Shown here: piece by piece, positions 36,034 to 41,509 of the stretch
Layout: every line of letters begins with the position of its first letter
Numbering within the stretch: position 1 is the stretch's first letter
Source: Obrimoposthia wandeli
Lineage: Eukaryota
DNA: 64,000 nt
Assembly: GCA_977020255.1 (NCBI GenBank)
Contig: CDROCS010006248.1
Coordinates: 1 to 64,000, forward strand
Direction: 5' to 3'
Program-made: the position numbers and the translations under genes
Notes under the pieces: generated by a model
The model's database searches: none
Seen by the model: only the letters and a program-made list of their open reading frames with translations
Told to the model about the DNA's origin: nothing

Positions 36034-36714
36034 ATGAAGCTATTGGTCGTAGAAGACGACGCAGATTTACGTCGTCAACTGGTCAGTGGACTTGAATCAA
36101 GAGGCTACACTATCGAAGAGACAGGCGACGGTAGAGAAGCGCTATATATGGGGTGTGAGTTTAATTACGATTTAGCTATCGTAGATTTAGGTTTGCCCTC
36201 CCTTTCAGGTGTTGATTTAATTAAGCAGTGGCGTGCTGCTGAGCGCAATTTCCCTATTCTGATTTTAACCGCTAGGGGCGAATGGCAGGACAAAGTTGAA
36301 GGTCTTGAAGCTGGAGCGGATGACTTTTTAGTTAAGCCTTTCCATATTGAAGAACTTGTGGCTCGATTAAACGCTTTATTGCGTCGTGCTGCTGGACATG
36401 CAAAGCCCGTTTTAGAGTTCGGAAACTTGTCGCTAGATACAGTGGGTCGAGTAGTTGCTTTTAACGGTAGGCCTATTAATTTAACCAGCTATGAGTACCG
36501 CACATTAGAATATTTGATGATGCATGCGGGTAAGACAGTCTCAAAAGCTGAGTTAACAGAGCACTTGTACCATCAAGATTTTGATAGAGACAGCAACGTG
36601 TTGGAAGTATTTATTCGACGCTTACGACAAAAGCTTGATCCTGACCAAACGATGTCGCCGATTACAACGGTGCGAGGTTTAGGGTATAGATTTGATCTAG
36701 TTCGCACGTCTTAA
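36034..36714 (+). CDS. phoP: OmpR-family response regulator, PhoP-like
   Basis: DLGLP, ILILTARGEWQDKVEGL.AGADD, FDRDSNVLEVFI and TVRGLGY. Confidence 0.75.
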   Translation: MKLLVVEDDADLRRQLVSGLESRGYTIEETGDGREALYMGCEFNYDLAIVDLGLPSLSGVDLIKQWRAAERNFPILILTARGEWQDKVEGLEAGADDFLVKPFHIEELVARLNALLRRAAGHAKPVLEFGNLSLDTVGRVVAFNGRPINLTSYEYRTLEYLMMHAGKTVSKAELTEHLYHQDFDRDSNVLEVFIRRLRQKLDPDQTMSPITTVRGLGYRFDLVRTS

Positions 36715-38072
36715 TGAATAAATGGCTCGGAGGTAAATCTCAGTCGATTAGATTTCGGCTTTTATTTGCCTTCTTGCTAATGATTATTGTTGTTTTTACA
36801 TTAGTTGGTTTGTTTTTAGACAGTACCTTCATAAAAGTAAAACAGCAAAACCTCGAACAAGAATTTTCCTCGCAAAGCAAAATCTTTAGCTCTTGTATTG
36901 ACGGCAACGTACTCGTTGACATCTCTCGTTATACTCGCTGCAGTGAAGTGCAGTATTTGATTAGTCAAAACAATAATTTGTATCTATACAGTTCAGAAGA
37001 AGAACTAATATGGCAGTACGAAGCGGACTCTACGCGACGTCATATTGTATCTTTGCATAACCTGAAAAAGGCTAGGACAAGTTTTAAAAGCTCTGAACAA
37101 AAAATATTAAAGATTAAAAATTATTATTTGTATGGGTCCCTGCTGAAAAAAGATCAAATTTTGATATTGAGTACAGATGGTGAATGGCTAAACTCAGAAA
37201 TAGCCAGTAATCGATTATATCTATTTGTTTTCTTATTGTTGTTCGCCTTAATTTTGTTGTGTAGCTTCATTTTTATTATGCACAGAGGACTGAAGCCGTT
37301 AGATAAAATGGTGCTCGATTTAAATGAAATAGCCACCGGAAACTCTCAAGAGCTGACTGATGAATATGCGACAGAGTTTCACGCAATCAGAAATAGCTTA
37401 AACAATTTGCTTAATGCCGAACGCTTGCAGCGAGAGCGTTATCGCAATACTTTAGCTGATTTAGCTCATAGTTTGAAAACACCTCTTGCCGTGTTGCAAG
37501 GTGCTGGGAACGAAGGCTTGCAATACTCTGATTATTTGACTGTCAGTGGTGAGCAAATACGTCGCATGGATCAAATAATTCAGTACCAGCTTACAAGAGC
37601 GGTTAAAAGCATAGATGACGGTGCTAAAACTAGTGCTGTTGCAGTCACGCCGATAATAGAGCGTATATTGACAGCGCTTGGTAAAGTGTACCGAGAGAAA
37701 GAAGTGCGAGCGATATTGAATCTAGAGCGAGATATCGAACTTAAGGCCGATGAACGTGATTTAATGGAAATGCTCGGTAATATGCTGGAGAATGCATTTA
37801 AGTACTGTCGTTCCGAAGTTGCTGTATCGCTATATAGCGACGATGATAACGTATTTATTGTGTTAGAAGATGATGGTGCGGGTGTGTCTGAAAATATGCG
37901 CAATACTATCTTAGAGCGAGGCGAAAGAGCTGATACATCGGCAGCTCCAGGGCAGGGAATAGGGCTAAGTGTATCGGTTGATATATTGAGTTCGTACAAT
38001 TGCCGATTAGAAGTAGAAGAATCTTACTCGCTAGGTGGAGCTAAATTCAGTATTACTTTTCCTAAAAGCTAA
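36714..38072 (+). CDS. phoQ: Sensor histidine kinase, PhoQ-like
   Basis: Two TM segments, RERYRNTLADLAHSLKTPLAVL, GNMLENAFKY, DDGAG and GQGIGL; start overlaps the phoP stop. Confidence 0.7.
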   Translation: MNKWLGGKSQSIRFRLLFAFLLMIIVVFTLVGLFLDSTFIKVKQQNLEQEFSSQSKIFSSCIDGNVLVDISRYTRCSEVQYLISQNNNLYLYSSEEELIWQYEADSTRRHIVSLHNLKKARTSFKSSEQKILKIKNYYLYGSLLKKDQILILSTDGEWLNSEIASNRLYLFVFLLLFALILLCSFIFIMHRGLKPLDKMVLDLNEIATGNSQELTDEYATEFHAIRNSLNNLLNAERLQRERYRNTLADLAHSLKTPLAVLQGAGNEGLQYSDYLTVSGEQIRRMDQIIQYQLTRAVKSIDDGAKTSAVAVTPIIERILTALGKVYREKEVRAILNLERDIELKADERDLMEMLGNMLENAFKYCRSEVAVSLYSDDDNVFIVLEDDGAGVSENMRNTILERGERADTSAAPGQGIGLSVSVDILSSYNCRLEVEESYSLGGAKFSITFPKS

Positions 38073-38091: not shown

Positions 38092-38403
38092 TTACTCGCT
38101 TTTTGTGTTTAACTTATCGTTTACACTATCAATCTTGTCTTGAATCGTTTGCGCCTTATCTGTGCGCGTACCCACTTTCATATGGCTTGTTATACGTACC
38201 GCACCCATATCATGTAATTCAGTATGGCAGCGCTTTACGGCAGCCATTACATCATCCCATTCACCTTCAACGTTGGTGCCGTAGCTATGCATTTGGTGGC
38301 TTAGACCTGCTTGTTGAAATATTTTTTGGCAATGCGCGACATAAGGTGAAACAGAAATTCCAACGCCGCCAGGTGAAACCATAATGTCCATAATTACATA
38401 CAT
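38092..38403 (-). CDS. MTH1187/YkoF-like thiamine-binding family protein
   Basis: VSPYVA, YGTNVEGEWDDVM and KVGTRTDK..T..DKI.SV. Confidence 0.85.
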   Translation of the reverse strand: MYVIMDIMVSPGGVGISVSPYVAHCQKIFQQAGLSHQMHSYGTNVEGEWDDVMAAVKRCHTELHDMGAVRITSHMKVGTRTDKAQTIQDKIDSVNDKLNTKSE

Positions 38404-38902
38404 GTTAGAGCCTATTTGTTATTTGAGAAATGAGTTGAGTCGTTTTAATGTGCAGCATTAAGCTGCTATTCTATTTTTTTGATTGAAAATTTGAAAACGC
38501 AAATGCTATTAGCGTTAAACTTTGCAGTCTATTTTACGCTTAATTAGCATCAATAAAACTTAAATATAAAGCTAAGTGGGCGTGTACACAATCAAATAAC
38601 AACTTGGTTCTATTGGGCAATGCTAGTTGTATCCAAAATTTATTAGGAAATGAATCAACATGTTTTTTGCCTTTAATAAATAATGTTCTATCCTTTGTAT
38701 ATGGCTTGTCGAAAAGGTCAGTAATATTGAATCAGTTTTATTAAAACGAATCGATATAAAGCAATATTTTTATTAGAGTGAAACCGCACAACTTAACCCA
38801 TTATTTAATCTAGCCTGTGCAGAAGTTTGCACTTTTGTTAGTCATGATTCGGTGTTTGTTCTGTTTTACACCGCAAATTACAGCACAGGAGTAGGAGATA
38901 CA

Positions 38903-39280
38903 ATGTCTTCATCATTACGTATTTTGGTTGTAGATGATTCGCTTAGTATGCGATTAGTCGTCACTCAACTTGTTACTAGCTTAGGTCATAAGGTGATTGG
39001 CGAAGCTAAAGATGGTTTGGAAGCTTTGAAATTATATATGGAGCATAAACCAGACGTTGTTATGCTTGATTTGGTTATGCCCAAGTTTGATGGGAAAAAA
39101 ACTTTAAGAAAATTGTTGCAAGTAGATAGCAATGCTCAAGTAGTTATATGTAGTTCATTGGGATCTGAAGGTGATATTGAATACTGTTTAAGAGAGGGTG
39201 CTAAGTTTTATTTGCAAAAGCCGTACGAAATAGACGGGGTTAAAACAGCATTAAATAGCTTATCTGAAACAGTTGATTAG
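38903..39280 (+). CDS. Stand-alone CheY-like response regulator
   Basis: VVDDS, LDLVMPKFDG (phospho-Asp), CSS and QKP; AGGAG RBS before 38903. Confidence 0.88.
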   Translation: MSSSLRILVVDDSLSMRLVVTQLVTSLGHKVIGEAKDGLEALKLYMEHKPDVVMLDLVMPKFDGKKTLRKLLQVDSNAQVVICSSLGSEGDIEYCLREGAKFYLQKPYEIDGVKTALNSLSETVD

Positions 39281-39290
39281 AGAGTAACGT

Positions 39291-40139
39291 ATGTCAAATA
39301 AATTTTTTGGTCAATTTTTGTTAGAAAAAGGGGTGATCAATAAAGAACAATTATTGGATGCCATAGATCGACAAAAAGCATCACATCTTAGCTTAGGGCA
39401 AATAGCAGTTAATAAAGGCTATTTGACAGAAGATGATGCAACAAAAATAAACATTGAACAGCAAAGAACAGATGAGCGTTATGGTGCATTAGCTGTTTCA
39501 ATGGGATATTTAAAAGGAAAACAAGTTTCTGAGTTATTCATTATTCAACAAAACACCCGTAAGTTTTTCGGTGAAGTGTTGGTTGAACAAGAAATAATTG
39601 ATAAAATTAATTTAATCAAATACTTGGAAGAGCACGCTGAGCTCAAGAAGAAGTCTACTTTGCAGCTTGATGGTGCAATTTATGCGCATCGACACGGCAA
39701 ACTAATAGCAGATACGATTAACAACACGGTTAAACTGTTTTTACGTATCATTAAAACTCAGGTTCAAGTTTCCAGTGTGAGTGAAGAAGAAGTAACTGTA
39801 GGTGAGGGGGAGCTATCGTTTTCACAAGCTTCAAATCTGCCTAAGCCAATTAGAGTAGGCTATGTTATGGATTCCAATTTGATGGTCTCTGTGGCTAGCA
39901 GCTTCTTGGATATGGATGTCAGCGGTAACCCAGCTGTTTATCAAGATGCAGTGTGTGAGTTTTTAAATATCGTATTAGGAAACTCTTTAGCAGGGCATAA
40001 CGGGGGTGCTGGTACCGAATTGTCACCTCCCGAAATACATGAGCCAGGCTATGATTTAAAAGGTGAGCACCAATCGGTTTTTAAAATAACGATGGCGGCA
40101 CCTAATCAGACGTTTACCTTGTTTTTCTACGATAATTAA
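39291..40139 (+). CDS. Four MshEN-like repeats fused to a CheX/CheC-type phosphatase domain
   Basis: N-terminal repeats xxGxxLLxxGxxxxxxLxxxxxxQ; C-terminal DAVCEFLN (D-x3-E-x2-N) followed by PP about 20 aa later. Confidence 0.65.
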   Translation: MSNKFFGQFLLEKGVINKEQLLDAIDRQKASHLSLGQIAVNKGYLTEDDATKINIEQQRTDERYGALAVSMGYLKGKQVSELFIIQQNTRKFFGEVLVEQEIIDKINLIKYLEEHAELKKKSTLQLDGAIYAHRHGKLIADTINNTVKLFLRIIKTQVQVSSVSEEEVTVGEGELSFSQASNLPKPIRVGYVMDSNLMVSVASSFLDMDVSGNPAVYQDAVCEFLNIVLGNSLAGHNGGAGTELSPPEIHEPGYDLKGEHQSVFKITMAAPNQTFTLFFYDN

Positions 40140-40150
40140 AACAAGCGCTC

Positions 40151-41509
40151 TTACGGTTTAGAGGTTAAGTTTTTAGAGAATACTTTAGAGTTGCGCTGCA
40201 AATTGTATATTTGCTGCTTCTCTTTAGGTAGTTGTTCTACGCTAATTTCCTTAAACCCTTGTTCTAAAAACCAATGAGCTGTTTTGGTGGTTAACACAAA
40301 GAGTGAGGTGAGATTTTTTGTTAGTGCTCTTTGTTCAACAGCTTTTAATAAAACATCTCCGCGATTATTTCCTAGATAACCTTGGTTGACAGCAATGCAA
40401 GCAAGTTCACCTATTTTTTCGCCTTCAAAACAATACAGTGCGGCACAAGCAATGATCGCATTATCTCTTTCAATGACGGTGAACTGCTCTATTTCGGCCT
40501 CTAAACGTTCTCGAGATCTGCGAACTAAGATGCCCTTCTCTTCTAAAGGGTTAATAAGTTCAATAATGCCGCCTATATCCTCAACCGTAGCGTCACGCAC
40601 TTGTTCGTAAGACTCTTTCGTCACCATCGTGCCACTACCATCACGAGTGTATAATTCAGCCAGCATAGCGCCATCAATTTTGTAAGAAATCAAATGGCAA
40701 CGCGGAACGTCATTATTGCAAGCTTCAATTGCAGCTTCTAACAACAAAGCCGTTTCTGAAAGTGATTGGTTAGGATCACTTATTTGATGCTGGTATTGGC
40801 TTAATAAGCGTTGTGCAGTACTGTTAATAAGCTCGCTACGTGTATCACCATTACTGTCCGTGATACCTTGCTCTTTGCCAAATAAAATTAATTTGTCAGC
40901 TTGCAGTGCAATAGCAGCACTGGTGGCTACTTGTTCTACTGGCAAATTGAAAATCTCACCAGTTGGTGAGTATCCAATCGTTGAAATTAACACTATTGAT
41001 TTTAGATCAAGTGTCTTTTCTATTGCTTGATGATCTACACGTCGCACTTCACCTGTGTGACATAAATCGACGCCATCGAAAACTCCTACCGGACGAGCAG
41101 TGATAAAGTTACCCGAAGCTAAGCGGATCTTCGCACCATGCATAGGAGTGTTGATCAAACCCATCGATAGTTTGGCTTCAATAATGGCTCTAATTGAGCC
41201 GCTAGCCTCAATTGCGCATTGCAAAGTATTGCTGTCAGTAACACGTCTTCTATGATGCAGTTGGGCTTGTAGGCCTTGATCGGCAAGCTTCTGCTCTATC
41301 TGAGGTCGAGCGCCATAGACTAATACTAATCGAATGCCTAAGCTGTTAAGTAATGCGATATCATGGATAACATTATCGAAGTTAGGATCTTTTATTGACT
41401 CCCCACTAAGCATGATTACCACCGTGTTATTACGAAGGGCATTAATATAAGGGGATGATTGGCGAAACCAGTTTAAATATTGGTTAACATCTGCCACAGC
41501 TAGCTCCAA
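40151..41509 (-). CDS. argA: Amino-acid N-acetyltransferase (N-acetylglutamate synthase)
   Basis: WFRQSSPYIN, GYSPTGEIFNL, ELYTRDGSGT, GNAT domain ELACIAV and RNSKV. Confidence 0.96.
   Translation of the reverse strand: MELAVADVNQYLNWFRQSSPYINALRNNTVVIMLSGESIKDPNFDNVIHDIALLNSLGIRLVLVYGARPQIEQKLADQGLQAQLHHRRRVTDSNTLQCAIEASGSIRAIIEAKLSMGLINTPMHGAKIRLASGNFITARPVGVFDGVDLCHTGEVRRVDHQAIEKTLDLKSIVLISTIGYSPTGEIFNLPVEQVATSAAIALQADKLILFGKEQGITDSNGDTRSELINSTAQRLLSQYQHQISDPNQSLSETALLLEAAIEACNNDVPRCHLISYKIDGAMLAELYTRDGSGTMVTKESYEQVRDATVEDIGGIIELINPLEEKGILVRRSRERLEAEIEQFTVIERDNAIIACAALYCFEGEKIGELACIAVNQGYLGNNRGDVLLKAVEQRALTKNLTSLFVLTTKTAHWFLEQGFKEISVEQLPKEKQQIYNLQRNSKVFSKNLTSKP

Follow-up and report, generated by a model that had tools for sequence, protein, structure and literature searches.

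A two-gene module pairing a CheY-type receiver with a CheX phosphatase that carries a putative c-di-GMP-sensing repeat array

A 64,000-nucleotide stretch of DNA from the Obrimoposthia wandeli assembly GCA_977020255.1 (contig CDROCS010006248.1, positions 1 to 64,000, forward strand; hereafter the window) contains two adjacent genes, here termed gene A and gene B. Gene A encodes a CheY-type single-domain receiver (REC), and gene B encodes a protein in which four tandem MshEN_N-like units precede a connector helix and a CheX phosphatase domain. On balance, we favor reading the pair as a self-contained two-gene cassette composed of a CheX phosphatase that senses cyclic di-GMP (c-di-GMP) and the CheY dedicated to it. 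As for the parts of this reading, gene B is very probably the CheX phosphatase for the adjacent CheY, and it is likely to bind c-di-GMP. The domain identities and folds, the conservation of catalytic and ligand-contact residues, and the pairing and fusions of the two genes were established computationally, and the layout is that of an intact two-gene operon, with a 10-bp gap between the genes. An initial annotation, made from the sequence alone, had located both open reading frames (ORFs) correctly and had proposed a nucleotide-sensing CheX with its own receiver. This proposal gains computational support from hidden Markov model (HMM) matches, from predicted folds, from the near-invariance of E223 and N226 in gene B, and from the recurrence of the REC beside or within its relatives.

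The CheX domain, its receiver partner, and the family

The C-terminal half of gene B was assigned to CheX by sequence and by predicted structure. The Pfam CheX model (PF13690) matched residues 189 to 251 with 30.8 bits against a gathering score of 27, and reached 48.6 bits with the relative P0032; both halves of the protein pass curated cutoffs, the N-terminal half being described below. Searches with the family profile recovered the Desulfovibrio CheX structures 3H4Y (7e-7) and 3HM4 (8e-7), as well as 1XKO and 3HZH_B, and E223 and N226 of gene B align on the catalytic Glu and Asn of 3H4Y and 3HM4. With Foldseek, the modeled half matched CheX-fold structures with TMt values ranging from 0.73 to 0.79, including Thermotoga maritima 1XKO_A (E = 3.6e-8, TMt 0.77), Desulfovibrio 3HM4_B (TMt 0.79), Vibrio vulnificus 6VPW (TMt 0.77), and the Borrelia CheX of the CheX-CheY3 complex (3HZH_B), while CheC, FliY, and FliM came lower in the list. 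The CheC/CheX signature that had been noticed in the translation, i.e., D-x3-E-x2-N followed by Pro, is present as D219, E223, N226, and P246-P247, with the conservation given in Table 1.

The hallmarks of a receiver are found in gene A, namely the acidic pair D11/D12, the phospho-acceptor D56, S84, Y103, and K106-P107. Among the partner RECs of the family (n = 81), D11, D12, D56, K106, and P107 are conserved in all 81 and S84 in 80. The best solved relatives of gene A are Pyrococcus CheY (6ER7, 4e-27) and Thermotoga CheY (1TMY/4IGA, ~7e-27); its top eight PDB matches are CheY proteins or a CheY fusion construct (4e-27 to 9e-24), and the first natural non-chemotaxis receiver among its matches is Spo0F, at ~3e-16. 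Gene A also matches Borrelia CheY3 (3HZH_A, 4e-20), which is the crystallized CheX substrate, and it scores 94 bits with the NCBIfam model CheY_Halo, under the equivalog cutoff of 200. Judging from its sequence, gene A belongs to the Thermotoga/archaeal type of CheY and is phospho-competent.

A word-based protein search retrieved 35 relatives of gene B, the best being 73% identical, and a single-peptide-pattern scan of one genome per GTDB species retrieved 204. The conservation and pairing counts reported here refer to a comparison set of 86 family members that are 25 to 66% identical to gene B. One relative, from the Osedax symbiont Rs1, is 65% identical and has the same synteny. According to the GTDB scan, the family occurs in Nitrincolaceae/Oceanospirillales, Psychrobiaceae, Nitrospirota, Deltaproteobacteria, Planctomycetia, Thermoanaerobaculia, and many Lysobacterales, the last including Pseudoxanthomonas, Luteimonas, Cognatilysobacter, and Novilysobacter.

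The neighborhood survey bore out the association of the phosphatase with a receiver. In 75 of the 86 loci, a single-domain REC gene immediately precedes the CheX gene on the same strand, and in 3 it immediately follows, so that it is adjacent in 78, in several phyla; in 3 others it is fused to the C terminus of the CheX protein (a fusion confirmed by Pfam for P0032), which brings the adjacent or fused cases to 81/86, and it is absent in the remaining 5. At two loci (L004 and L061), a CheA-MCP-CheW-MCP cluster ends with the REC-CheX pair. Gene A is 39% identical (3e-31) to the partner REC of L004, while the respective CheX proteins are only 29% identical, and it shares 24% and 36% identity with the CheYs encoded in the two che clusters of the complete genome that is closest. 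Because of this pairing over 86 loci, the fusions, and the identities among partner RECs, the REC and the phosphatase can be said to travel together. As a separate observation, two loci from uncultured bacteria (L082:2563-4847 and L078:146-1426) encode a CheX protein with a C-terminal REC fusion followed by CheW and MCP genes, and in L082 a second, unfused paralogue lies directly upstream of the fused one.

The four-unit repeat array of gene B

The N-terminal part of gene B comprises four 24-residue units, each followed by a 5-residue spacer, which results in a 29-residue period and agrees with the four tandem units of MshEN spacing described in the initial annotation. The MshEN_N motif consists of two RLGxx(L/V/I)(L/V/I)xxG(L/V/I)(L/V/I)xxxxLxxxLxxQ copies with 5 residues between them. 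Scored against the 11 constrained positions of the relaxed MshEN motif of Wang et al. 2016, units 1 to 4 meet 10, 9, 11, and 8 positions, respectively, and only unit 3 combines a full match with the leading Arg. The array is beyond chance, since the NCBIfam model NF053729 (“c-di-GMP motif, MshE-related”) matched gene B over three stretches with 74 bits against a cutoff of 38 (E = 6e-21). Weak NCBIfam matches to PRK15489, EpsG, and NfrB were also found.

According to the MshE crystal structure reported by Wang et al. (2016, Nat Commun 7:12481), the backbone amide of Gly3 reads O6/N7 of guanine, Gln24 bonds ribose and phosphate, and the hydrophobic positions form a guanine sandwich. The ligand-contact residues in both motifs of a pair comprise Arg1, Gly3, Gln24, and hydrophobic positions 2, 17, and 21. 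Gly3 is found in 86/86 relatives in each of the four units and Gln24 in 86/86, 86/86, and 85/86 in units 1, 2, and 3, the values for unit 1 being overestimates, since this unit served as the seed of the locus search. Most hydrophobic ligand-contact positions are also retained. The departures from the ligand-contact positions are position 21 of unit 2, which is Asn family-wide instead of a hydrophobic residue, and position 24 of unit 4, which is His (58/86) or Phe (22/86). In addition, the turn Gly10 of unit 4, Gly in 65/86 relatives, is Glu in gene B. The leading Arg is kept in unit 3 only (67/86 relatives), and the corresponding residue of unit 1 is an invariant Phe after Lys across the family. 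That a single unit keeps this Arg had been noticed in the initial annotation and taken as a reason to doubt the ligand. The observation holds, but the doubt carries little weight because, in the mutant affinities given by Wang et al. 2016, a change of Arg9 shifts affinity by at most 5-fold and each conserved hydrophobic residue by more than 10-fold. Apart from the units themselves, the spacer between units 2 and 3 (residues 58 to 62, window positions 39462-39476) is the most conserved of the three; within it, Asp61 is present in 85/86 relatives and is flanked by the invariant Gln57; it lies outside the published MshEN motif.

A full-length AF2 model of gene B was built on an 18-sequence family alignment (predicted local distance difference test [pLDDT], 89.6; predicted template modeling score [pTM], 0.78). 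It shows eight short or long helices that form four helix-turn-helix units, then a continuous helix (Table 1), and finally an alpha/beta domain. When the N-terminal 125 residues were modeled alone, the pLDDT was 92.1, and the predicted fold is a four-helix bundle superposable on the GSPII domains of MshE and PilF. The best Foldseek matches of this N-terminal model were c-di-GMP-bound PilF-GSPIIB from Thermus and MshE (5HTL), with a root mean square deviation (rmsd) of 0.8 to 0.9 Å over 56 columns and a probability of 1.0; the E-value was only ~0.3 because the domain is small. In agreement with a fold related to MshEN, VIA-align superposed the model on 5HTL_B with a Z of 11.4 and an rmsd of 1.4 Å over 58 residues, and on PilF-GSPIIB with a Z of 10.2 to 10.6. 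The Z of 11.4 stands above those of unrelated helical matches (fumarase C-terminal domains, Z ~8). The family profile likewise matched Thermus PilF (6F8L) at 7.6e-15 and Vibrio cholerae MshE (5HTL) at 1.8e-6, with residues 62 to 113 in register with MshE 8 to 59.

Four half-motifs are conventionally read as two tandem MshEN_N modules, and the sequence profiles pair units 1 and 2 with PilB/PilF and units 3 and 4 with MshE. Any two neighboring units can mimic the MshEN_N bundle because all three spacers are 5 residues long. A further likeness was observed between gene B residues 32 to 92 (window positions 39384-39566) and the C-terminal domain of class II fumarase/aspartase (Z ~8, rmsd 1.5 to 2.6 Å), and the relatives P0030 and P0032 have weak Pfam FumaraseC_C matches; this superposition probably reflects a shared small helical arrangement rather than homology.

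Genomic setting and candidate kinases

The features of the locus are listed in Table 1. The window is a bacterial contig, Nitrincolaceae-like in appearance, inside a large host/holobiont assembly of 1.35 Gb and 6912 contigs that contains many bacteria; CheA matches (at least 20) and GGDEF matches (more than 150) are scattered over many of the contigs. The nearest relatives of the window are Oceanospirillales MAG-10 and the Osedax symbiont Rs1. The latter shares the gene order ilvD / PhoPQ-like / Thiamine_BP / REC / CheX / argA / pit / phoU / CYTH / glnE, and a PhoPQ-like pair upstream of REC-CheX recurs in other Nitrincolaceae loci (L001 and L014-L020). An Rfam scan of the pair plus 500 bp upstream for a c-di-GMP riboswitch or other RNA gave no match with E up to 1, and a consensus promoter and terminator scan yielded no more than shuffled controls.

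Table 1. Positions of the two genes, their domains and motifs, and the flanking genes (coordinates are those of the window; counts refer to the 86 relatives)
Feature	Coordinates	Strand	Details and basis
Gene A, CheY-type single-domain receiver, 125 aa	38903..39280	+	ATG at 38903, stop at 39280; ORF list, Pfam PF00072 6e-23
Gene B, (MshEN_N-like unit)x4 - connector helix - CheX, 282 aa + stop	39291..40139	+	ORF, HMMs, AF2
Unit 1 (aa 5-28)	39303..39374	+	FFGQFLLEKG...Q; position 1 Phe for Arg, Gly3 and Gln24 present
Unit 2 (aa 34-57)	39390..39461	+	SLGQIAVNKG...Q; position 1 Ser, position 21 Asn
Unit 3 (aa 63-86)	39477..39548	+	RYGALAVSMG...Q; canonical motif at 11 of 11 positions
Unit 4 (aa 92-115)	39564..39635	+	FFGEVLVEQE...H; position 1 Phe, Gly10 to Glu, Gln24 to His
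Continuous predicted helix (aa 105-132), unit 4 long helix running on as CheX connector	39603..39686	+	DSSP, AF2 model
CheX phosphatase domain (aa 136-282)	39696..40136	+	Pfam, profile, Foldseek
Catalytic signature D219-x3-E223-x2-N226	39945..39968	+	D 84/86, E 84/86, N 83/86
P246-P247, 3′ of catalytic helix	40026..40031	+	P246 80/86, P247 84/86
Shine-Dalgarno AGGAG, 5 nt 5′ of gene A ATG	38893..38897	+	Direct sequence reading
Divergent thiamine-binding-protein gene	38092-38403	-	Upstream neighbor of gene A
Convergent argA-like gene	40151-41509	-	Downstream neighbor of gene B
OmpR-type regulator and PhoQ-like histidine kinase (context only)	36034..38072	+	ORFs, Pfam

The initial annotation had stated that neither kinase nor che genes lie nearby. 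No che gene was indeed found around the pair within the 64-kb window, but the statement is wrong with respect to kinases because a PhoQ-like histidine kinase is encoded 0.8 kb upstream of gene A on the same strand. This kinase was considered as the partner of gene A and rejected, because it has its own OmpR-type regulator and because the OmpR/PhoQ-like pair, although syntenic in Nitrincolaceae relatives, was not found beside the more distant carriers of the REC-CheX pair.

Since the source assembly mixes many bacteria, searches for CheA, CheX, and GGDEF proteins in it are uninformative, and complete carrier genomes were used in its place. A check of five carrier genomes for CheA and FliM found FliM and 2 to 3 CheAs in every one, and in a partly overlapping set of five carrier genomes, 4 to 40 GGDEF proteins were found in each. 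The closest complete genome (G001) comprises a flagellar cluster with CheY-CheZ-CheA-CheB and a second cluster (L094:8231-16943) with STAS-CheY-CheA-CheW-PAS-MCP-CheR-CheD-CheB, which has no phosphatase gene; its REC-CheX cassette is far from both. A role of the cassette in serving the phosphatase-less second cluster is not supported, because that cluster carries its own CheY. In other lineages, kinases adjoin the pair: a hybrid kinase with TPR lies directly upstream in the Psychrobium group (L003 and L021), and a hybrid histidine kinase of ~1550 residues with two receiver domains directly follows the pair in two Pseudoxanthomonas (L036:9027-13682 and L045:9094-13713). These four hybrid kinases are candidate cognate kinases in their respective lineages.

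Proposed mechanism, alternative explanations, and known systems

From these data we infer the ligand and its binding stoichiometry, the allosteric coupling, the substrate, and the kinase, as follows. An unlinked kinase, either one of the CheAs of the organism or a hybrid kinase, would phosphorylate D56 of gene A, and the CheX domain would then insert E223 and N226 into the active site of the CheY and hydrolyze the acyl phosphate. Binding of c-di-GMP to the N-terminal array would shift the long helix of unit 4, which is continuous with the CheX connector, and phosphatase activity or the CheX dimer would be altered as a result. The continuous unit 4/connector helix is the most plausible route for such a signal, with a change in CheX dimerization as the alternative. 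Cellular c-di-GMP would thereby govern the lifetime of the phosphorylated gene A product (CheY-P), whether by activation or by inhibition, and the “settle down” second messenger would probably set the duration of a motility signal.

Several observations weigh against this mechanism. As regards the catalytic domain, the Pro residues of gene B stand at +20/+21 after the catalytic Asn, and the CheC/CheX consensus places Pro at +23. No kinase can be assigned to the pair, and in the closest complete genome each of the two che clusters is already equipped with a CheY. The best superposition on MshE covers residues 32 to 89, i.e., units 2 and 3, and not units 1 and 2 or units 3 and 4. In the array, the leading Arg is missing from units 1, 2, and 4, hydrophobic position 21 of unit 2 is occupied by Asn (L21N), and unit 4 of gene B has Glu at the turn Gly (G10E) and His at Gln24 (Q24H). 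Moreover, folding alone may account for the conservation of Gly3 and the hydrophobic positions, and the conservation of unit 1 is overstated for the reason given above. According to the comparison of binders and non-binders by Wang et al. 2016, substitutions of the general kind seen in units 1, 2, and 4 abolish binding in XpsE, a non-binder in which the Gly3, Gln24, and hydrophobic contact positions are lost (G11V, G40L, L54H, L58C, and Q61V). Finally, among literature full texts on MshEN/T2SSE_N together with CheX, only Wang et al. 2016 and a 2026 V. cholerae study were found, and neither is experimental on the fusion.

The same departures would suit repeats that persist as a degenerate MshEN_N-like scaffold for dimerization, localization, or docking and bind no nucleotide, leaving a constitutive CheX for the adjacent CheY. 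XpsE provides a precedent for an MshEN fold that persists without binding (Wang et al. 2016), and the Foldseek E-values for the small N-terminal domain are weak (0.3). We nevertheless consider such a scaffold unlikely: NF053729 scores well over its cutoff, and Gly3 is invariant in four units and Gln24 in three down to 25% identity, which are positions that XpsE has lost (G11V, G40L, Q61V; Wang et al. 2016). The small effect of Arg9 on affinity in the same study (at most 5-fold) and the resemblance of the N-terminal model to ligand-bound forms also argue against it. Alternatively, the CheX domain could act mainly on the CheY of a flagellar or other che cluster, with the adjacent REC as a regulator or phosphate sink. 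Such an arrangement would be consistent with carriers that are flagellated and have 2 to 3 CheAs, with a second che cluster in the nearest complete genome that lacks a phosphatase, and with the distance of the window pair from any che cluster. It seems quite improbable, however, given that the REC is adjacent or fused in 81/86 loci across phyla, that the partner RECs group with one another (gene A has 39% identity to a distant one versus 24 to 36% to local CheYs), and that at L004 and L061 the partner REC is the sole stand-alone CheY in the examined part of the cluster. Less probable still is an array that binds a different ligand, for example a linear nucleotide of the pGpG type or a cyclic dinucleotide other than c-di-GMP, or that binds with an unusual stoichiometry. 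Phe at position 1 of unit 1, His or Phe at position 24 of unit 4, and the near-invariant Asp61 are all conserved in the family and non-canonical, and three overlapping unit pairings are geometrically possible; yet guanine specificity arises from the backbone amides of Gly3 and the next residue (Wang et al. 2016), a geometry that is retained, and the portion of the MshEN_N literature at hand reports no other ligand.

We thus retain the c-di-GMP-sensing CheX phosphatase with its dedicated CheY as the favored reading. Beyond it, and more speculatively, the REC and four-repeat CheX might be a portable cassette that was born in a che cluster and is here cut loose from CheA. It could then serve as a phosphate sink or timer that is tuned by c-di-GMP and links the global level of this messenger with chemotaxis or with another phosphorelay, and its four-unit array might bind unlike MshE, e.g., through a site across units 2 and 3 or through cooperative multi-site binding via the unit 4/connector helix. 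We regard this extension as doubtful.

The path by which c-di-GMP acts on the phosphorelay of chemotaxis is under active study. The known routes are indirect, such as those of YcgR, which acts at the motor, and MapZ, which acts on CheR1. PlzC acting on CheX in V. cholerae is likewise an indirect route (PMC12799141). If our reading is correct, no link described so far would be as direct as a phosphatase that has its own CheY and contains a c-di-GMP-type sensor; c-di-GMP would set the half-life of CheY-P. The family is widespread and includes the cultured, tractable genera Pseudoxanthomonas, Luteimonas, Cognatilysobacter, and Geobacter, and the prediction is therefore testable with two small soluble proteins. 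The finding would not surprise a specialist, but the cassette would represent a clean, testable, and direct link between c-di-GMP and CheY-P lifetime.

Several known systems share parts of this arrangement. Like the c-di-GMP receptors V. cholerae MshE (N-terminal domain, 5HTL) and Thermus PilF (GSPII domains, 8PDK and others), gene B has the 24-residue motif, the 5-residue spacer, a four-helix bundle (predicted), and the contact residues Gly3 and, in three of its four units, Gln24. It differs from them in lacking the MshEN_C subdomain and the secretion ATPase, in having a phosphatase output, in its four half-motifs in a row instead of two, and in the replacement of Arg1 in three units. With stand-alone CheX proteins (T. 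maritima 1XKO, Borrelia burgdorferi 3HZH, and V. cholerae), it shares the fold, the catalytic Glu/Asn helix, and, as a putative substrate, a CheY of the non-enteric class, but it carries ~135 additional N-terminal residues. In V. cholerae, c-di-GMP signaling meets the stand-alone CheX in trans via the PilZ protein PlzC, independently of c-di-GMP (PMC12799141), whereas in gene B a c-di-GMP-type sensor is fused in cis. As in NfrB and EpsG-type fusions (glycosyltransferase and tyrosine kinase), the MshEN_N module is the N-terminal regulatory input of an enzyme, although the output domain and the pathway differ.

The closest precedent is found in Wang et al. 2016 (Nat Commun 7:12481), who associated MshEN with CheA and CheX and catalogued “(MshEN_N)2-CheX” in their Supplementary Table 4, in Deltaproteobacteria and Firmicutes, with Geobacter lovleyi Glov_2742 as the example. 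Glov_2742 has the same domain order as gene B and four half-motifs, read there as two MshEN_N modules. Its start, MAVKFFGQFLVEQ (Supplementary Fig. 3c of the same paper), shares the KFFGQF signature with the start of gene B, MSNKFFGQFLLEKG. Because of this common N-terminal signature, gene B and Glov_2742 belong to one protein family, which was thus already catalogued in 2016. The Glov_2742 entry gives a predicted architecture only, and constant CheY pairing, REC fusions, and che-cluster versions are not mentioned in it. In comparison with the taxa of the 2016 listing, the range now extends to Gammaproteobacteria (Nitrincolaceae, Psychrobiaceae, and many Lysobacterales), Nitrospirota, Planctomycetia, and Thermoanaerobaculia. 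What is new over that entry is therefore the wider taxonomic range, the near-constant CheY partner, the REC fusions, the che-cluster versions, the residue conservation, and the ambiguity of unit pairing.

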